IMG/VR virus record: IMGVR_UViG_3300042465_005589
Span: 1-64,000 of that record
Reading direction: 5' to 3' (one strand)
DNA: 64,000 nucleotides
Shown: positions 3,543 to 58,905 of the stretch, in pieces
Layout: every line of letters begins with the position of its first letter
How positions within the stretch are numbered: position 1 is the first letter of the stretch
Made by a program: the position numbers and the translations under genes
Notes under the pieces: model-generated
What the model was told of the DNA's origin: nothing
Seen by the model: only the letters and a program-made list of their open reading frames with translations
The model's database searches: none

Positions 3543-3766
3543 TTATTAAGGAATTCTTTTGGACCGATTCCTAACTCCATTATAGATAAGTTTTTTTTAT
3601 TGTAAATCAGCATCATTTTTTCTTCAGAACCGGCCATTGTACAAAACCAATGAGTTGCAGGTTCTTCTCCTGTTGGGGAACAAGGTATTTTCATAACATT
3701 TTTATTTACCCAAGATTCTCTAACTTGTTCTACCTTATCGTTTTCTGTTAAAATATTTATTCTCAT
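3518..3766 (-). CDS. hypothetical protein
   Basis: 82-aa ORF tightly packed in the minus-strand operon. Confidence 0.6.
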   Translation of the reverse strand: MRINILTENDKVEQVRESWVNKNVMKIPCSPTGEEPATHWFCTMAGSEEKMMLIYNKKNLSIMELGIGPKEFLNKWGVKIIK

Positions 3767-3767
3767 A

Positions 3768-4010
3768 TTATTTATTTTTTAATAAATTAAGGGATTCTTT
3801 CTTTTCTTCTCTTGACTTCGGTTTACTCTTAAACATATTAAAAACTTCCGTAATTTCTTCAGAAGTATATGTATTAAGTAATGTAGTTTTAGTGTCCTCA
3901 CACTCTCTGTGTGTCATTTCATAAGCATCTTTTGAGTTATCAACCCAAACATCATTTTCTAAAGATTGTAGAAACTTATTATCACTTTTTCTTTTAATAT
4001 ATTTTATCAT
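3768..4010 (-). CDS. hypothetical protein
   Basis: 80-aa ORF, 1-nt spacing to next gene, A-rich leader. Confidence 0.6.
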   Translation of the reverse strand: MIKYIKRKSDNKFLQSLENDVWVDNSKDAYEMTHRECEDTKTTLLNTYTSEEITEVFNMFKSKPKSREEKKESLNLLKNK

Positions 4011-4034
4011 TTTTTTTCAGTTTTAATTTTTTTA

Positions 4035-4997
4035 TTAGTCATTGAAAACATAAAATGTTAATGTGCTATTAGCACAGAACTGAGTTTCAAGATTTGTTGA
4101 CATAGTTAAAATTATGTTCCCACCATCGTCAGAAAACGTACCAAGAAAACTTGTATTAGTATCTGTATTCAATACGGTAACAACTTCAGATATGTCATTA
4201 ACAATAGTACCACCACTTGTGTAAAAAGATTGAATAAACATATCTCCACAATAAAACTCAACACTTACATTTGTGAAAGGAAATGATGTTGTAGTTCCAC
4301 TTATTACTGTTGGTGTGGTATCTAAATCTTGTAGAATTTGAATTTCAATCGAGTAGTAGTATAAACTATTGTCAACTGGTTCAGGAACACTTAAATCAAC
4401 AACAAAAAGAATAATACTATCGTCTTTCTCATTAAAATTATTAGGAAATATAAAAGTTTCTATTGGGTTAGGTCCAAAAATGGGTGTTTGATTCCCACCT
4501 AGAAGGAATGTTGAATTTCTATTAAAAGTATTATACAGTGGGCCTGTAGTTGAATTAAACCCTACATAAACTCCTGTAAAATCCTTAATCCACTCAATAT
4601 CGAATCCCAAGTTATTTTCTAATACTGTTACCACTAAAGTAGCACTAGATACTAAAGTAGAACCGTTATTCCAATTTGTTGGGGTTTCCCCTGTTGCAAT
4701 GAATATACATCCCGTTGTGTCTATAACTCCACTTGTTACATTAGCAATATTACTAAAACTATCACCACTAACATAATTGACTATCGTGTAAGTTTCACCT
4801 ATAATAAAACCACCATTAAGACCACCAAAATCATTTAAGGTTGTGCCGGTCTGAGAACCTATATCAGTTAATAACGCTTTGTAAGTCGCCAAATTTCCTG
4901 TTGTTACACCTGTAACACTTAAATTCCCATTTATGGTTACATTACCATTTATCGTTTGCCCCGATAAATTATCTACAATATATTTTGTTCTTGCCAT
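4035..4997 (-). CDS. putative virion fibre/structural protein
   Basis: T/G/N-rich, fibre-like TINGNVTINGNLSVTG repeat. Confidence 0.55.
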   Translation of the reverse strand: MARTKYIVDNLSGQTINGNVTINGNLSVTGVTTGNLATYKALLTDIGSQTGTTLNDFGGLNGGFIIGETYTIVNYVSGDSFSNIANVTSGVIDTTGCIFIATGETPTNWNNGSTLVSSATLVVTVLENNLGFDIEWIKDFTGVYVGFNSTTGPLYNTFNRNSTFLLGGNQTPIFGPNPIETFIFPNNFNEKDDSIILFVVDLSVPEPVDNSLYYYSIEIQILQDLDTTPTVISGTTTSFPFTNVSVEFYCGDMFIQSFYTSGGTIVNDISEVVTVLNTDTNTSFLGTFSDDGGNIILTMSTNLETQFCANSTLTFYVFND

Positions 4998-4999
4998 TA

Positions 5000-7600
5000 T
5001 TATTCGTTTATATTTATTATGTTTAATACATCACTTCCATCGTAGTAAGATAACCTATTTGATAATGCAGAATTTTTGAAGATATTACAAGTATATAACT
5101 CATAAACTGAAGGGTTTTGACTAATACTTGTAACCGTAATGATTACATCATCAGAATAAACGGATTCAACAATTATGGTTATGTCTTCCGTACTACCAAA
5201 CACATCTCCAGATATTGTTAATAGCTCTCCAACTAAATAACCTGTGCCTCCCTGATTTAACACTACACTACTAACTACTCCGCTAGTAACTGTAACATCA
5301 AAAGATGCGTTTTCACCACTACCCGTACCTTGTGCAAATATATTAGGATATGAACCTGTAACCCCTGTTATTCCAATCCCATTCCCTGAAAATGTAGTAA
5401 TAACACCTGTGTCACCACCAATAGATGTACCTAATATTGTTATTGTATCACCAATAACATATAATTCACCCGCGTTGTTTATAGTAACCCCCGTTACAGT
5501 CCCACCTGAAACCACAATAGTAAATGTTGCGTTAACACCTAAACCGTTAGTTGTACCTGCAATGGCCGTGTATGTATTATTAGTTGTCCCTGTTCCTAAA
5601 TCATTATAAGTAATGCCACTTATGTTCCCATAATTTGTTGTAAAATCAACATTATTTACATAGGTATCAACAATATTCCATTGAAAATAATCACCAATAA
5701 TATTGTTATAGAAGTTATCAGGAATTGTATTGTTGTAAAAGTATTCACCAATAGTATTATTATTAAAATAATTTCCAATTCTATTTCCCTGATTATATGA
5801 ACCTCCAAAACCAAATCCATCTTGAATATCATTACTTCTAAAATCTGTTCCCAGTGTATTGTACGAAAATGAACCATAACAAGTATTAAATTCAAAATAA
5901 TCTCCGATATTGTTATGTATTGTGACTCCACTAAAAGTATTAGGCACACACCCAAATCCTATATTATTATATCCAAACTCCTCAAATATATCATTACCCT
6001 TAAAATCTGTTTTAATTTGGTTACTCCAAAAATTACCTTGAATGTCGTTACCCTTAAAATTATTCATAATTTGGTTGTTTTCAAAAGTAAGTAAGTTGTC
6101 AACTCCACCAATTGTGTTTAGATTGAAACCATTTAATATTGAATTTTTTCTAAAGTCAAAATATATGGTATTAGCATTAAAATCATCACCTATACTATTT
6201 GAGTAGAAAGAGTTTGGTATGATATTGTCATAAAAATTATCACCTATAAAATTGTCATTAAAGGACTGATTAATAATTAGGTTTTGAGAAAAGTCACCGA
6301 CAATAGTATTGTTTTGGAATCCACTATCTATGAGGTTATTATTAAAGCTGTCCCCAATATTATTATTTTGAAAATCGCTATTATTAAACGTTAAGAAATT
6401 ATTTGTGAAATATGAACCTATTCGGTTAAAATCAAAATCTTGTCCATCGGCATCTCCTAACATATTATGTTGAAAATAGTTACCAATCTGATTTGAGTCC
6501 ATATCACAATCAATAATGTTGTATTGAAAATATGAACCTATAATATTTCCGTCAAAATTATTTGTTATTATATTATATTGACAATACGGTCCGACTATAT
6601 TTGAGTTCATAACATCATTGAAGGTATTACCTACCACATTTCCACCGAATGTGTTATTTTCATATGGCCCACTTAAAAATACGTTATTTGATAATATGAA
6701 AATATTATAATCAATATTATTCCCCAAGTATGTGTTATAATTATTCCCATCATTAAATGTATAATACTCCGCAAATTCATCATTAGTTGTTCCTGTGATA
6801 TTACATTGGAATGGATTCATATAGTTAGGTAATCTTATCCCCGCAGAATAATAGACATTACTCACATTTGCTAATGTTCTACCTGTGACATACATTTCAA
6901 CATTACTAACTATCGACGAAATTTCATAATATTGGAAACTAGCTGTCCCATTAATACCAGATGAGTAAACTCCAAAAATATCACCAACAGTAAAATCAGT
7001 TGTGAATGATGTTCCTGATTGTGCTGTAGTAACTTGTCCGGTTGTACCATCCAAATTAATTTTACCATTATAGAATTGTTCTGAAAAATAACCAACATAT
7101 CTTATAAATTGAACCGCTCTGAAATCATAGTCGGCTCTGTTATTAAATTGGTCAATTCTTTCAGTAATTCTACCTTTAGCCGGTCCACCTGTTACTTCTG
7201 TTATATTCCAAGTTATATCGTAAGATATTTTGTCTTGTGGGTGTAATGTTGAGTATACCGTAGGGGAGAATCCTGTTGTTGATATCGCTAACAATAATAT
7301 AGGTTCTGTTGACCCTGTCTTATAATTACCGGTAGCTATTGGGGTACCATTAACATCATAGTTTGGTTGGTCGTAACACGTTTGGAAGTCAGTCATTAAA
7401 TAATAACTTCCTGCGGTTAGTGTTTCACCTGTGGCGAATGAATATAACTCATCGTAAGTTCCTTCGTTATAGTTTGAATTAGTGAATGCCGAATATGCTA
7501 TATGGTATGTATCCCCGCTCAATTCTACGGGAAATAATGTATCGTTTGTTAGAAATTGTAAAAGAGATAATTCTCCGATTGTTTTACCTGTTAATGCCAT
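5000..7600 (-). CDS. putative tail fibre/spike with parallel beta-helix repeats
   Basis: many ~11-aa NxIGxxFxxN repeats; C-terminal beta-rich repeats (GELYVIGDTITI, GTGYLVGELLTI). Confidence 0.7.
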   Translation of the reverse strand: MALTGKTIGELSLLQFLTNDTLFPVELSGDTYHIAYSAFTNSNYNEGTYDELYSFATGETLTAGSYYLMTDFQTCYDQPNYDVNGTPIATGNYKTGSTEPILLLAISTTGFSPTVYSTLHPQDKISYDITWNITEVTGGPAKGRITERIDQFNNRADYDFRAVQFIRYVGYFSEQFYNGKINLDGTTGQVTTAQSGTSFTTDFTVGDIFGVYSSGINGTASFQYYEISSIVSNVEMYVTGRTLANVSNVYYSAGIRLPNYMNPFQCNITGTTNDEFAEYYTFNDGNNYNTYLGNNIDYNIFILSNNVFLSGPYENNTFGGNVVGNTFNDVMNSNIVGPYCQYNIITNNFDGNIIGSYFQYNIIDCDMDSNQIGNYFQHNMLGDADGQDFDFNRIGSYFTNNFLTFNNSDFQNNNIGDSFNNNLIDSGFQNNTIVGDFSQNLIINQSFNDNFIGDNFYDNIIPNSFYSNSIGDDFNANTIYFDFRKNSILNGFNLNTIGGVDNLLTFENNQIMNNFKGNDIQGNFWSNQIKTDFKGNDIFEEFGYNNIGFGCVPNTFSGVTIHNNIGDYFEFNTCYGSFSYNTLGTDFRSNDIQDGFGFGGSYNQGNRIGNYFNNNTIGEYFYNNTIPDNFYNNIIGDYFQWNIVDTYVNNVDFTTNYGNISGITYNDLGTGTTNNTYTAIAGTTNGLGVNATFTIVVSGGTVTGVTINNAGELYVIGDTITILGTSIGGDTGVITTFSGNGIGITGVTGSYPNIFAQGTGSGENASFDVTVTSGVVSSVVLNQGGTGYLVGELLTISGDVFGSTEDITIIVESVYSDDVIITVTSISQNPSVYELYTCNIFKNSALSNRLSYYDGSDVLNIININE

Positions 7601-14664: not shown

Positions 14665-15375
14665 ATGATAAAAATACCTTTAACTAAAATATTATTTTTA
14701 GATATAGAAACTGTTGGAATTGAAAAAGATTATGACACTTGTTTAGAAAAGAGACCTGAACTCGCTAAACAATTTGACAAATATTACGATTGGTTTTTAA
14801 AACGATTTCCTGAAGATAAGGAAATTGAAGTTAACCAAAAAAATACAGTGTTTGCAACAAGAACAGCTTTAGTTCCTGAATTTGCAAAAATTGTTTGTAT
14901 GAGTGTTGCGTTTGTAATGGATAATGGAGATATAAAAAAAACAACCTTTTCCGGAGACAACGAAAAAGAGGTATTAAAAGAATGTCAAAAATTATTAGAC
15001 CGTTGTGGTAAATTAGATTTTTTTCTATGTGGACATAATTTAAAAAACTTTGACATTCCAATGACAGCTAAAAGAATGATTATTAATGGATTATTACCCC
15101 CATCAATTCTACCTTCTTACGATACAAAGCCGTGGGAAATCAAAGCTATTGATACTAGAGAAATTTGGCAATATGGTGCTTATACAGCGATTGGGTCATT
15201 AGACTTGATGTGTACTTCAATGGAAGTTCCATCACCAAAAGAGGGTGAAGTTACCGGAGATAAAGTACACGACGCATATTGGAACAAAGATATGTTAGAA
15301 GAAATATCTGCATATTGTGAACGTGACGTATTAGTCTTAATTGACATAATAAAAAAATTAAAAGAATTAGAATAA
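14665..15375 (+). CDS. DEDD 3'-5' exonuclease (PolB-exonuclease-like)
   Basis: FLDIET, GHNLKNFDIP, YCERDV. Confidence 0.85.
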   Translation: MIKIPLTKILFLDIETVGIEKDYDTCLEKRPELAKQFDKYYDWFLKRFPEDKEIEVNQKNTVFATRTALVPEFAKIVCMSVAFVMDNGDIKKTTFSGDNEKEVLKECQKLLDRCGKLDFFLCGHNLKNFDIPMTAKRMIINGLLPPSILPSYDTKPWEIKAIDTREIWQYGAYTAIGSLDLMCTSMEVPSPKEGEVTGDKVHDAYWNKDMLEEISAYCERDVLVLIDIIKKLKELE

Positions 15376-16055
15376 TGTTTAACGAAGATTTAGATTTTTT
15401 AAAAAACAAAGCGGAAGAATTAAAAAAATTAGCGAATATTGATTTAGATGATTTAAGTTATGATGATATAATGAGTGAATTTGGTTTGGATTTAAAACAA
15501 CTTGAAGAAGATATGTTAAATTCAAAAACAAGATTACCATTAGGATTTGTAAAAATTCATCCCGACGCAATAACCCCGAAATATAATTATGATAGTGATT
15601 CAGGTTTTGACCTACATTCTGTTGAAGATGTTACCATAGAAGCTTTCGGTCGAGCGTTAGTTCCTAGCGGACTATCCTTTGATATTAAAGATGGATATGA
15701 GATTCAAGTTAGGACTAAAAGTGGTTTAGCCATTAATCAGGGTCTTATGGTTTTAAACTCACCTGGAACTGTGGATTGTTTTTCAGAAGATATGAAAATA
15801 CTAACAATTAAGGGTGAAAAAACGATAAATGAATTAAATCTTAATGATGTTATCTTTTCATTTAATGAAAAGACATTAGAAATTGAAAAAGATATTATTA
15901 CCAACATTTTTAACACGGAAGAACAGGAAATAATTGTTTTTGAAACTGACAATGGAATATTAGAGGTTACACCTAATAGTGAAGTTTATACTAAAAGAGG
16001 GTTATTGTTGGCTAAAGATGTGAAAGAAAATGATGAGATTATTGTTTTTTATTAA
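15375..16055 (+). CDS. dut: dUTPase N-terminal part fused to N-half of a split intein
   Basis: dUTPase motifs SGFDL and RTKSG, half of motif 3 (GTVD), then intein block A CFSEDMKILT; ends at TAA. Confidence 0.9.
   Translation: MFNEDLDFLKNKAEELKKLANIDLDDLSYDDIMSEFGLDLKQLEEDMLNSKTRLPLGFVKIHPDAITPKYNYDSDSGFDLHSVEDVTIEAFGRALVPSGLSFDIKDGYEIQVRTKSGLAINQGLMVLNSPGTVDCFSEDMKILTIKGEKTINELNLNDVIFSFNEKTLEIEKDIITNIFNTEEQEIIVFETDNGILEVTPNSEVYTKRGLLLAKDVKENDEIIVFY
15777..16052 (+). mobile_element. split intein N-fragment (92 aa)
   Basis: Cys1 (codon 135); Hint-like blocks; block B reads EVTPNSEVY; ends AKDVKENDEIIVFY. Confidence 0.85.
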
Positions 16056-16064
16056 CCTGTGTAA

Positions 16065-16071
16065 TATTTAT
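16065..16071 (+). promoter_or_regulatory. putative late promoter motif for the endonuclease and the IntC-dUTPase gene
   Basis: TATTTAT 20 nt upstream of ATG 16092. Confidence 0.5.
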
Positions 16072-16091
16072 CAATAAAGATAAAGGGTATA

Positions 16092-16976
16092 ATGGTAAAA
16101 TGTTTAATTTGTGGGGTAGAAAAAAAATGTTCAATTGTTGAACATTTAAAATTTGTACATCAATTAAAATCTGATGAGTATAAAAAAATGTTCTTTGGTT
16201 CAAAAGTTAAATCAGATGACGAACTATTAAAAATGTCGGATAGAGCCAAAAAAAATTGGAGTAGTCCTGAGTATAAAGAATCTCAAATTAAAATTAGAAA
16301 AATTACACATCAAGACCCAATTTTTAAAGAAAAGATGTCTGAAACTTTAAAGAAAAAACATAAAGAAAATCCGGAGTTATTCACAGGATTTACTCAATGG
16401 TCTAAAACTGAGAAATATAAAGAATGGGTTATATCAAAAGAACGAACAGATAAAATATCTAAAACTAGTAAAAAAAGATGGGAGAATGACGAATATCGAG
16501 AAAAAACCATCAATTCTATTAAGAAATCATTAAATGATGGAAGGTGTGATAAATCGTTAGAGTTTAGAGAAAAAATGTCAATAATTATTTCAAAATTATA
16601 TGCAAATGGTACAATATCTAACGAATCAAATAAATATAAAACAGGTAAATATAATTCAAAAACAAATGAGGTATTTTTATATTCCTCATCATATGAATTG
16701 GAATCTATGGTATTATTTGATGATTCCAACAATATAAAAAGTTGGACTAATAAACATGGAATTAGAATTAAATATTTTTATAATAATTTAAATAGAAATT
16801 ATGTTCCCGATTTTTTAGTTGAGTTTATAAATGGAGTTACTTATATTATTGAAATGAAAGGATGGAACACTGAAGAGGTTGATATTAAAGAATATTACAC
16901 AAAAAAAACATACCCTAACTATAAAATATTCTATAGTGTTAACGAATTAAAACAATTTATAAATGAAAACAACTAA
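16092..16976 (+). CDS. free-standing putative homing endonuclease (C2H2 finger, NUMOD-like basic repeats, TnsA-like PD-(D/E)XK domain)
   Basis: CLIC...H...H; repeated KMS/KIS..K..W....Y helices; YSSSYE...YVPDFLV...IIEMKG. Confidence 0.75.
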   Translation: MVKCLICGVEKKCSIVEHLKFVHQLKSDEYKKMFFGSKVKSDDELLKMSDRAKKNWSSPEYKESQIKIRKITHQDPIFKEKMSETLKKKHKENPELFTGFTQWSKTEKYKEWVISKERTDKISKTSKKRWENDEYREKTINSIKKSLNDGRCDKSLEFREKMSIIISKLYANGTISNESNKYKTGKYNSKTNEVFLYSSSYELESMVLFDDSNNIKSWTNKHGIRIKYFYNNLNRNYVPDFLVEFINGVTYIIEMKGWNTEEVDIKEYYTKKTYPNYKIFYSVNELKQFINENN

Positions 16977-17070
16977 AATACTTAAAATTTCAAAAACAAG
17001 AAAACAAACTTATGATATTACCGTTGAAAATAATCATAATTTTTTCTGTAACAATCATTTAATTCATAAT
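16963..17070 (+). mobile_element. split intein C-fragment (36 aa)
   Basis: TYDITVENNHNFF (block F), LIHN (block G), followed by Cys+1. Confidence 0.9.
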
Positions 17071-17268
17071 TGTGGTTATACCGGAGAAGTTAAAGGAATT
17101 ATATTTAACACCAATAATCATCCTGTAACAATAACTAAAGGAATGAAATTTGGTCAAGCGGTGTTGTGTCCCGTTGTAAATGGGGGTTGGGTTCATTTGG
17201 ACCAAAGAGACAAAGTTACAGATAAAGAAAGAGGTGATAATGGGTTTGGCTCAACAGGATTAATATGA
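16963..17268 (+). CDS. dut: C-half of split intein fused to dUTPase C-terminal part
   Basis: after HN: CGYTGE (rest of motif 3), KFGQ (motif 4), RGDNGFGSTG (motif 5). Confidence 0.9.
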   Translation: MKTTKILKISKTRKQTYDITVENNHNFFCNNHLIHNCGYTGEVKGIIFNTNNHPVTITKGMKFGQAVLCPVVNGGWVHLDQRDKVTDKERGDNGFGSTGLI

Positions 17269-18773
17269 TAACAGTAATATACTCAACACATAAAGATGAA
17301 CAATATAATAACAAATTTAAACAACATTTGTTACAAACCGTTGGTTTAAAAGACGTTCAAATTTTAGAATACAAAAACAATAATGAATTTAGTTTGGCTG
17401 AGATTTACAATAAAGGTATTTCTCAATCAATTTTTGATATTGTAATTTGTTGTCATAACGATATCAAATTAGAAAATGGTTGGGGAAAAAAATTATTAAA
17501 AGATTTTTCAAATAACCCTGATTATGGGATTATTGGAAAAGCCGGTTCTTGTTATTTTCCTGAATCAGGGGTGTACTGGGAACGTATGCAACAAACAATG
17601 GTGGGACAAGTTTATCACCATCCCGATGGTCAAAATAAATGGTTAAGTAAATATTCTTTAAAATTACCATATTTAATTCCAGTAGTAACTATTGATGGGT
17701 TATTTATATCATTTGATAAAACAAAAATTAATCATCAATTTGATGAAACAATTGGAAGATTCCATTTTTACGACCATTTATTCTGTATTCCTAATTATAT
17801 AGATGGTATTAAAATTGGTGTAACATCTTCTTTTGAAATTACACATCAGTCCGTTGGGAGACCGAATCAAGAATTTTGGGAAAGTAAAGATAAATTTATT
17901 GAAAAGTGGGGAAGTAATTTGCCATTAGATTTAAAACCTGAAAAAATTTACATTCCTGAAATAAAAGAAAAACCAATTAAGAATATTGGTAGAGTTGCGG
18001 TTATAATCCCAACCAAAGGAAATGTTGAAATGTTAAAAGAATGTGTTGATTCATTTTACAATTATTGTAATTCTGAGTTATTTGATATTTTTATTGCGGA
18101 CACCGGTTCTACGGATGATGAAAAAGAAATATTAAAAAACAATATAAAAAATTATAACAACATAAAACTAATTGAGTACGATTACTATAATTTTTCAAAA
18201 ATTAATAATGATGTTGTAAAAAATCACGTAACAAATAAACACGAATTTTTATTATTCTGTAATAATGATATTAAATTATTAAATAATGTTATTTATGGAA
18301 TGTTAAATATTTTTAAAACAACACCCAAAGTTGGTACCGTTGGGTGTCGACTTCATTTTGAAGATAATACTATTCAACACAACGGTGTTATTTTAGCTAT
18401 AAATTCAAATAATATTTTTAATATTGGTCATGAAAATTTTAGTTGTTACTATAATTATATAATAAATAAAACAGAGGTTATTGGAAATACTGCAGCACTG
18501 ATGATGATTAAAACAAATATATTTAAAGATAATGGTATGTTTAATGAGAATTATCTTGAGTGTTTTGAAGATGTAGAATTAAATTTTAAATGTGTAATAA
18601 GTGGATATAAAAATTATATGTGTGGTGATTTAGTTGGTTATCATTATGAAAGTAAAACTAGAAATAACGATAACAATAAATTAACAAAACAAAACGAAGA
18701 TTACTTAAAAAGATTATTACCATTTTTAAATAAAAATTATCTTAAACTATTAAAACTAATTAAAAAAAATTAA
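17265..18773 (+). CDS. two-domain GT2-family glycosyltransferase
   Basis: CHNDI and CNNDI motifs, VIIPTK, ADTGSTD, FEDVEL. Confidence 0.85.
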   Translation: MITVIYSTHKDEQYNNKFKQHLLQTVGLKDVQILEYKNNNEFSLAEIYNKGISQSIFDIVICCHNDIKLENGWGKKLLKDFSNNPDYGIIGKAGSCYFPESGVYWERMQQTMVGQVYHHPDGQNKWLSKYSLKLPYLIPVVTIDGLFISFDKTKINHQFDETIGRFHFYDHLFCIPNYIDGIKIGVTSSFEITHQSVGRPNQEFWESKDKFIEKWGSNLPLDLKPEKIYIPEIKEKPIKNIGRVAVIIPTKGNVEMLKECVDSFYNYCNSELFDIFIADTGSTDDEKEILKNNIKNYNNIKLIEYDYYNFSKINNDVVKNHVTNKHEFLLFCNNDIKLLNNVIYGMLNIFKTTPKVGTVGCRLHFEDNTIQHNGVILAINSNNIFNIGHENFSCYYNYIINKTEVIGNTAALMMIKTNIFKDNGMFNENYLECFEDVELNFKCVISGYKNYMCGDLVGYHYESKTRNNDNNKLTKQNEDYLKRLLPFLNKNYLKLLKLIKKN

Positions 18774-56856: not shown

Positions 56857-58905
56857 ATGACAGAACCTATGGATGGTGGAAGTAACGGTGGAAATAATAA
56901 ATCAGTTAAGACTGATTCATCAACACCTGTATTAGACAATTTTAGTAGAGACCTTATTAAATTAGCCGAACAAGGAAAACTTGACCCGGTAATTGGTAGA
57001 GAAAGGGAAATCACTAGAATTGCTCAGATTCTTTCACGTAGAAAGAAAAATAACCCAATCATTATTGGTGAACCTGGTTGTGGTAAAACAGCAATCGTTG
57101 AAGGTCTTGCCATTATGATTTATAATGGGGAATGTCCAAGAAACTTAATGGACAAACGTATCGTATCATTAGATATGACATCAATTGTTGCCGGAACCAA
57201 ATATCGTGGACAATTTGAGGAAAGAATGAAAGTTATCATTGAAGAACTTCAAAACGAACCTAACATTATCGTATTCATTGACGAAATCCACACAATAGTT
57301 GGTGCAGGAAATTCATCAGGTTCAATGGATGCGTCTAACATCTTTAAACCAGCACTTGCTCGTGGTGAGATTCAATGTGTTGGAGCAACAACCTTAGACG
57401 AATATCGAAAAAACTTTGAGAAAGACGGAGCGTTAGAAAGACGTTTTCAAAAAGTTGTTGTGGATTCAGCAACCAAAGAAGAAACTTTGGAAATCCTTAA
57501 AAACGTAAAAGACAAATACGAGAACTTCCATAAGGTAACTTATACGGATGAAGTATTGTCTGTATGTGTTGATTTGGCTGACCGTTATATCACTGACAGA
57601 GAATTCCCGGATAAAGGTTTTGATATCATTGATGAAGTGGGAGCAAGAAGTCAAGTTGATATTAAGATGCCGGATTCAATTGAGAAATTGAAACAACAAG
57701 CGTCTGATATCAAACAAGAAAAGATTGATGTTGTAAAACAACAACGATATGAAGAAGCTGCGAACTTACGTGATAAAGAAAAACGTATCTTAACCAAACT
57801 TGAGACTGAAAAGAAAAAGTTTGAAGAAGAACTTCTTACTCACAAAAAAGAAATCACATTAGATTTAGTTTATGAGGTTGTGTCTAACATGACCAAAATT
57901 CCGGTAACCAAATTAAATGCTGATGAGACCAAACTATTATCTGAGATGGAGGCAAACCTATCTGATAAAGTTATTGGACAATCTGAAGCCGTTTCAAAGA
58001 TTGCTAAGTCAATCCGTAGAAACAGAATTGGTATTAAGGACCCGAACAAACCAATCGGTTCATTTATCTTCTTAGGTTCAACAGGTGTTGGTAAAACATA
58101 CTTGGCGAAACAACTAGCAAAACAAATGTTTGGTAGTGAAGATAATATGATTCGTGTGGATATGTCTGAATACCAAGAAAAACACACCATCTCAAGATTA
58201 ATTGGAGCACCTCCGGGATACGTTGGATACGATGAAGGGGGACAATTAACCGAACAAGTGAAAAACAAACCTTATTCTGTAATTCTATTTGATGAGATTG
58301 AGAAAGCTAACAAAGATATCTTCTCAACACTTCTTCAAGTATTAGACGACGGTCACCTTACCGATGGTATGGGGAGAAAGATTAACTTCAAAAATTGTGT
58401 CATCATTATGACCTCTAATGTTGGAGCTAAAAAATTACAAGATTTTGGTTCAGGAGTTGGTTTTAAAACCGGAACAAGCACTTATGCTGATGAAGAATAC
58501 AAACGTGATGTTCTTAAAAAAGAACTTAAGAAATTCTTCACACCGGAATTCTTAAACAGAATTGATGAGGTTGTTATCTTTAACACCCTAATTAAAGATG
58601 ATGTTAAGAAAATTGTGAAATTGGAATTAGACAAACTATCTAAAAGATTAGTTGGTTTGAAATACGATATTACATTTGATGATACCATTTTAGACCTAAT
58701 CTCTGAAGTTGGATTTGATGAGACCTACGGGGCTAGACCAATCAAAAGAGCAATCCAAGATAAAATTGAGGATTTTGTGTCCGAAGAAATTATCAAAGGA
58801 AATATGGTGGAGGGTGTTCCATACACCCTTATATCCGTAGAGAAAGAAGTGGTAGTTAAACCGGAAGTTGTTAAAAAGACAAGAAAGAAAAAAGAGGACA
58901 TATAG
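56857..58905 (+). CDS. clpC: ClpC-like AAA+ unfoldase lacking the N-terminal domain
   Basis: two AAA modules ([13 protein letters not shown]; [15 protein letters not shown]), UVR-like middle domain ([11 protein letters not shown]), ClpP-docking loop GVGF. Confidence 0.88.

Follow-up and report, generated by a model that had tools for sequence, protein, structure and literature searches.

The histidine of intein block B is described, in the available text of reviews, as the most conserved intein residue, and the only natural exceptions listed there are the orthologues of the Tko CDC21-1 intein, which are active and compensated by a lysine, and the pseudogene Arth_1007 (PMC7765530). The Tko CDC21-1 inteins splice without this histidine (Tori et al. 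2012, as summarized in the accessible portions of PMC7765530 and PMC6333167). For the engineered H73A mutant of the Ssp DnaB M86 intein, the accessible part of the report states that any -1 side chain larger than that of Ala or Abu rescues the N-S acyl shift (Friedel et al. 2018, PMC6333167). Split inteins encoded in fractured genes, exemplified by gp41-1, NrdJ-1 and IMPDH-1, have been described together with GIY-YIG or Vsr-like endonucleases (Dassa 2009, PMC2677866).

The locus described here lies in a window of 64,000 nucleotides, the whole stretch of DNA that was analysed, taken from an IMG/VR virus record of 318,164 bp that is rated complete. Because the genome encodes T4-type major capsid, portal and terminase proteins (Pfam), the virus is a jumbo T4-like phage; the same proteins rule out a giant eukaryotic virus. 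The genome contains no second dUTPase gene, and no other inteins were found in it. The single dUTPase gene is fractured: the two intein halves, on open reading frames 15375-16055 and 16963-17268, flank an endonuclease frame at 16092-16976, and the order and orientation of the host-gene parts are kept. We regard it as likely, from the conservation patterns set out below, that the two halves belong to an active, naturally split intein of class 1, which splices in trans and does so without a block-B histidine. The features of the locus are as follows.

15375-15776, plus strand: dUTPase N-extein, residues 1-134, with the first two motifs and motif III as far as the end of its first half, G-T-V-D (PF00692 and PDB dUTPase matches; the intein-less allele L044 aligns up to 15776).
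15777-16052, plus strand: IntN, 92 aa, with Cys1 at 15777-15779 and the stop codon at 16053-16055 (TIGR01445, family profile, 120 homologues).
15969-15980, plus strand: block B of IntN, T-P-N-S, with Thr65 (B:7) kept and Ser68 instead of His (B:10) (profile alignment and family counts).
16092-16976, plus strand: free-standing homing-endonuclease gene, 294 aa, whose last 14 nt overlap the start of IntC (weak profile matches, AF2 model).
16963-17070, plus strand: IntC, 36 aa, with Asp18 at 17014-17016, His25 at 17035-17037 and His35-Asn36 at 17065-17070 (TIGR01443, gp41-1 match).
17071-17268, plus strand: dUTPase C-extein, with Cys+1 (17071-17073), G-Y-T-G-E of motif III and motifs IV and V, stop included (profile matches, intein-less allele).
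15777-17070, plus strand: the whole mobile insert, 1,294 nt, comprising IntN, a 36-nt spacer, the endonuclease gene and IntC (absent from intein-less L044).

The first frame encodes a 226-aa protein, of which residues 135-226 are the N-intein half, starting C-F-S, and Asp-134 is the -1 residue of the intein. The last frame encodes 101 aa, the 36-aa IntC followed by the C-terminal dUTPase part. Positions 3-64 of the PF00692 profile are covered by the N part and positions 71-129 by the C part, so that the five motifs of trimeric dUTPases are distributed across both exteins. IntN matches the TIGR01445 intein_Nterm model at E 7.3e-5 with 23.7 bits, below the cut-off of 24.5, and IntC matches TIGR01443 intein_Cterm with 18.9 bits, above the cut-off of 15.6, as well as the gp41-1 intein. 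Like the fractured-gene inteins of PMC2677866, the locus consists of an N part fused to IntN, a free-standing endonuclease frame and IntC fused to a C part, in a phage setting, with the break at the usual endonuclease insertion point and the start of IntC overlapping the end of the endonuclease gene. Unlike them, it has dUTPase as its host, a protein not named as such in that paper, its endonuclease is TnsA-like PD-(D/E)xK with a C2H2 finger rather than GIY-YIG or Vsr-like, and the block-B His is missing.

Block B of IntN is encoded by the codons aca cct aat agt and corresponds to T199-P200-N201-S202 of the 226-aa product, or intein residues 65-68. The first-pass annotation of this DNA had reported T-P-N-S in place of T-x-x-H at 15961-15990; the place is right and the numbering one base off, the decapeptide L-E-V-T-P-N-S-E-V-Y occupying 15960-15989. 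The replacement itself is confirmed by alignment with solved inteins. In a profile of 91 distinct family IntN sequences (alignment A1), which matches solved inteins at E 2e-6, the Ser68 column coincides with the His of T-g-N-H in both Npu DnaB (4o1r) and Spl DnaX (7cfv), with that of T-a-N-H in Ssp DnaB (1mi8) and with the corresponding His of the BIL domain 2lwy; a single-sequence alignment pairs S-P-N-H of the AceL NrdHF intein with T-P-N-S. A misalignment, in which another histidine structurally fills the block-B site, is very improbable. The candidate for such a role is His32 (G:3), an extra, mostly conserved histidine of IntC close to the active-site strand, but 3 of 105 homologues have Phe or Tyr there. 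None of the 92 residues of the window's IntN is a His, in each of four independent solved HINT domains the block-B His falls on Ser68, and the modelled strand after Ser68 (residues 70-71) pairs with IntC residues 33-34, as block B should with block G.

To place this serine in its family, we compared 120 proteins that join the N part of dUTPase to IntN, recovered by a word search (49-100% IntN identity, contigs up to 318 kb). Aligning the intein with these homologous dut inteins, as the first-pass annotation had proposed, gave Ser at B:10 in 98 N-halves, Thr in 22 and His in none, clearly at odds with its proviso that close homologues might all have His. No His occurs anywhere in IntN in 78 of the 120, and in the remainder it is scattered. 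The Ser codons at this site are AGT/AGC as well as TCC/TCA; the Thr codons are ACT/ACA. Since the two Ser codon families are joined only via Thr or Cys codons, their joint use indicates that a hydroxyl side chain, Thr or Ser, is selected at B:10 in this lineage. The other splicing residues that had been listed as retained, namely Cys1, Asp18 and His25 of block F, His35 and Cys+1, are all present in the window, as is the terminal Asn36. Cys1 is invariant in the 120 N-halves, Thr65 (B:7) is invariant in the 91-sequence alignment, and Asp18 (F:4), His25 (F:13), His35-Asn36 and Cys+1 are invariant in 105 C-halves (proteins joining IntC to the C part of dUTPase). Estimates of dN/dS (NG86) are 0.15-0.19 for IntN, 0.13 for IntC and 0.19-0.27 for the exteins, values that are rough because dS is saturated; by these estimates both intein halves are under purifying selection.

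These data bear directly on whether the missing histidine is an artefact, due to a read error or to a mutation private to this sequence, or a sign of decay, as in the intein pseudogene Arth_1007. The only other reported natural His-less cases do include a pseudogene (PMC7765530), and a Thr-type relative, L059, has a defective C-half. The identical protein is found on 38 contigs, however, and the IntN match reaches 100% identity in six IMG/VR loci, which excludes a read error. Nor is the mutation private, since every one of the 120 homologues has S or T. Selection on both halves is purifying, neither frame is interrupted and the endonuclease motifs are invariant, so that artefact or decay is scarcely credible as an explanation. 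The L059 frame (~1700-1859), encoding IntC and C-extein, has Ser as its +1 residue and is closed by an in-frame stop two codons further on; decay of this copy or an assembly error close to the contig end may be the reason.

The intein has most of the features by which class 1 is recognized: a position-1 nucleophile, the B:7 Thr, the F:4 and F:13 residues, block G and Cys+1 are present, and the B:10 His is absent. Class 3 (WCT) features are absent, as F:4 is Asp, position 1 is Cys and block B has no Trp. A search for a unique residue replacing the His found none: only D39, I44, G48 and T/S68 are clade-specific in IntN, with no obvious general acid/base among them. Lys38 is K or R in ~85% of the representatives of the Ser/Thr clade and mostly Glu in the group with Lys or Gln at B:10, and Lys15 and Lys80 are not clade-specific.

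Searching 1.84 billion representatives with a profile yielded 2,996 matches, of which the best 150 were examined. Among these 150, 107 have His at B:10 and 30 have Thr; Ser accounts for 5, Lys for 6 and Gln for 2. All 42 representatives inserted at the dUTPase site (after G-x-[VI]-D) lack the His (35 with Thr or Ser, six with Lys and one with Gln), and all 107 clear non-dUTPase inteins among the same best 150 have it, one further, weak match being the exception; the hosts of these His-bearing neighbours are radical-SAM enzymes, helicases and others. Deeper Thr-type members share the window's IntC motifs and its type of endonuclease, which is TnsA-like. The Lys-bearing inteins form a clade (L046-L053 and L055; for example L047:2833-3537, 3594-4442 and 4414-4719) in which block B reads P-x-x-K, so that Thr and His are both gone, a His replaces the Asp at F:4, and the free-standing endonuclease is Vsr-like. 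From its sequences, this K clade looks like a different active-site rearrangement at the same insertion point. In the Q variant, L054 (2947-3486 and 4384-4677), block B is T-x-x-Q and Ser replaces the His at F:13. Like the window's intein, the K clade and the Q variant are split, inserted after G-x-[VI]-D of motif III and devoid of the block-B His, with Cys1, His-Asn and Cys+1 kept; they differ from it in the block-B and block-F residues just given and in their Vsr-like endonuclease. Just downstream of the fractured K-clade dUTPase of L047, at 4773-6524, lies a PhoH-like gene that has a contiguous intein with a LAGLIDADG endonuclease domain. In IntC, Cys29 (window 17047-17049, in N-F-F-C after block F) is invariant in the Ser/Thr clade; the position is Gly or Ala in the K clade, and the Q variant has a divergent motif there.

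The residues seen at B:10 can be linked by one nucleotide change at a time, starting from His (CAY) and passing through Gln (CAR), Lys (AAR) and Thr (ACR) to Ser. A quick tree from all columns places all 39 dUTPase-site IntN sequences on one side of a branch with SH-aLRT 93. A careful tree without the block-B columns requires three changes, and no bootstrap tree has a single clade; an AU test does not reject a single dUTPase-site clade (p 0.37). The trees are thus compatible with one to about four losses of the His, and one loss in an ancestor may account for the association of the His-less state with the dUTPase site.

We also predicted the structure of the complex of IntN with IntC. The pair scores 0.75, the best control 0.00, and the mark applied to this score is reached by 58 of 80 solved complexes and by 2 of 110 mismatched pairs. 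At least 94% of the contacts are shared between runs, with partner pLDDT of at least 76. The two halves are therefore predicted to associate, a pass that may reflect likeness rather than give proof because solved split-intein complexes exist. The modelled contacts, between IntN 53-56 and IntC 7-11, IntN 41-44 and IntC 18-21, and IntN 70-71 and IntC 33-34, correspond in the model to those of a split HINT fold, and the last of them would place Ser68 beside the end of block G.

Predicted docking would equally be expected of a splicing-dead clasp, in which the halves only hold the dUTPase fragments together non-covalently, like the tails of the fractured Aeh1 NrdA. That a gene which a mobile endonuclease has fractured can be rescued non-covalently is documented (PMC3045599), and the His is essential in related DnaB inteins. 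A clasp needs no nucleophiles, however, yet Cys1 is invariant in all 120 N-halves, and Asn36, His35, Cys+1 and the block-F Asp and His in all 105 C-halves; Cys1, His-Asn and Cys+1 are retained in the K and Q sister groups too. The Cys at +1 stands in place of the native Asn and never reverts, and a HINT domain of ~128 aa attached directly behind the catalytic motif-III Asp would probably get in the way of the active site of the trimer. The invariance of Cys1, the terminal Asn and Cys+1, which a clasp would not require, disfavours this explanation, and we consider it improbable.

Somewhat less remote, and still unlikely, is a slow or conditional splicer, in which the first step is slow or depends on redox state, temperature or concentration, so that dUTPase would be active late or in some infection states. 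Loss of the His slows inteins in which it is not essential (PMC6333167), translation of IntC appears to be coupled to the endonuclease gene through the 14-nt overlap, and the invariant Cys29 is specific to the Ser/Thr clade. Against this, the element offers no regulatory signal, promoter-like and terminator-like sites around it being at chance level, and in the complex model Cys29 contacts IntN residues 7-8 and not Cys1. The His-less state is moreover fixed across a deep family in many phage lineages, and for this reason it looks like a stable catalytic solution. This explanation overlaps with active splicing without the His, the reading that we prefer.

Active splicing would proceed as follows. 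The two dUTPase halves would be translated separately, and IntN (92 aa) and IntC (36 aa) would associate into a HINT fold. Cys1 would form a thioester with the -1 Asp, this first step taking place without a block-B histidine, and the N-extein would pass to Cys+1. Asn36 would then cyclise, aided by His35 and the block-F His25, and the product would be an intact dUTPase with Cys for Asn in motif III. The TnsA-like endonuclease encoded between the halves would spread the element into intein-less dut alleles. Judged from the sequences, splicing most probably occurs at the dUTPase locus. The first-pass annotation had left three options, an atypical mechanism, slow or conditional splicing that controls dUTPase timing, and a splicing-dead clasp; the first of these is now favoured, as a His-less hydroxyl is fixed in the family and the other splicing residues are invariant, the evidence weighs neither for nor against control of timing by the second, and the clasp is disfavoured.

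How the loss of the His might be compensated can be suggested by analogy. A hydrogen-bond network of Thr65, Asn67, Ser/Thr68 and the block-F Asp18 could take over part of its role, and strain or assistance could come from the non-glycine -1 residue, which is the invariant catalytic Asp of dUTPase motif III. We infer compensation by this hydroxyl/Asn/Asp network together with the -1 Asp because -1 side chains larger than Ala rescue a block-B His-to-Ala mutant (PMC6333167). The resemblance to that mutant, Ssp DnaB M86 H73A, extends to the fold, DnaB-type mini-inteins being the best solved matches of IntN, and the -1 residue here is always non-glycine (Asp). It differs in being engineered, whereas the loss here is natural and fixed, and Asp is not among the -1 residues in the available text of that study (PMC6333167).

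A more specific proposal, which we hold only tentatively and rate as rather doubtful, is that the -1 Asp of motif III joins in, or replaces, the His-assisted activation of the scissile bond, by substrate-assisted catalysis or steric strain. If so, an imidazole beside this Asp would be unnecessary or harmful. Such activation would explain why inteins with Thr, Ser, Lys or Gln at B:10, accompanied by two endonuclease types, all lack the His, while their neighbours in other hosts keep it. Because the AU test allows a single clade, the link between loss of the His and the dUTPase site is not independent evidence for such extein-assisted catalysis. That Asp at -1 promotes cleavage is an existing idea, which is not used as evidence here; a literature search on this point found nothing.

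The Tko CDC21-1 inteins, according to the accessible text on them, are the closest natural parallel, as they too are conserved inteins without a block-B His, with the loss fixed in an allelic group, and they splice. As described there, they differ in being archaeal and contiguous, in residing in CDC21/MCM, in having Leu at -1 and in being compensated by Lys58, a residue outside the motifs. In the inteins described here, Ser or Thr replaces the His, the intein is split and phage-borne, the host is motif III of dUTPase and the -1 residue is Asp. No invariant Lys equivalent to Lys58 was identified in IntN of the Ser/Thr clade, and a search of the CDC21-1 structure paper (PMC6801210) for the compensating Lys found nothing.

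Intein-less alleles delimit the insertion. Unsplit dUTPases of 152-153 aa are colinear with the two exteins, and where their C-exteins align with the window's, identity reaches up to 94%. The allele L044, which is among them, aligns to window positions 15489-15776 and 17073-17909 with nothing between, which defines the 1,294-nt insert at 15777-17070; its +1 codon is AAT (Asn), where the window has TGT (Cys), and the glycosyltransferase gene that follows downstream is in conserved synteny. The insert is only slightly AT-richer in base composition. Nucleotide identity between L044 and the window is 76% upstream of the insertion site and 90% downstream, an asymmetry that could reflect recombination or a co-conversion tract left by homing. 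The intein-bearing dUTPase N-half also has an acidic N-terminal extension of ~46-50 aa (window 15375-15520), which is absent from the closest intein-less alleles (P0220 and P0240); a similar one is found in K-clade N-halves.

The endonuclease has an invariant N-terminal C2H2 zinc finger (C-x2-C...H-x4-H), followed by helical repeats and a C-terminal PD-(D/E)xK core comprising E202, D240, E254 and K256 (E...P-D...E-x-K), the motif residues being invariant in 10 orthologues. It weakly matches DUF1064, TnsA_N, the BPTD_3080 restriction-endonuclease model and PHROG endonuclease families, and the solved fold nearest to its AF2 model (pLDDT 73.7) is TnsA (1f1z; Foldseek E 2.7e-4). The order of N-half, endonuclease and C-half is seen in 30 of 39 IMG/VR loci. 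One locus has a frame-broken remnant of the endonuclease, and a 47%-identical clade, with T-P-G-T in block B, has both halves and all catalytic residues but no endonuclease, only a 65-nt spacer. As the halves are intact where the endonuclease is broken or absent, the split intein outlives its endonuclease. Among 50,697 deposited phage genomes there were no carriers of the element.

On the present evidence from sequence comparison, these proteins make up a His-less lineage of class-1-like split inteins that is new and abundant, and whose host protein is new as well; a literature search for work linking split inteins with dUTPase found none. The lineage is large, diversified and metagenome-wide, with all members at one extein site and with Asp at -1. 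Its Thr/Ser, Lys (with block-F His) and Gln forms provide a natural series for testing an imidazole-free N-S acyl shift and the share of the extein in it. dUTPase is added to the hosts of inteins, and a TnsA-like PD-(D/E)xK enzyme to the endonucleases of fractured genes. For protein engineering, the family may be a source of small split inteins (92 + 36 aa) of unusual junction tolerance.

Two further genes of the window were noted. The minus strand at 2-2800 encodes at least 933 aa of a protein with collagen triple-helix repeats (Pfam Collagen, E 1.7e-110), which runs off the start of the window; periodic repeats of 9, 18 and 27 nt in this gene keep several frames open on both strands. At 56857-58905, on the plus strand, the phage encodes a ClpB/Hsp104-like double AAA+ ATPase.
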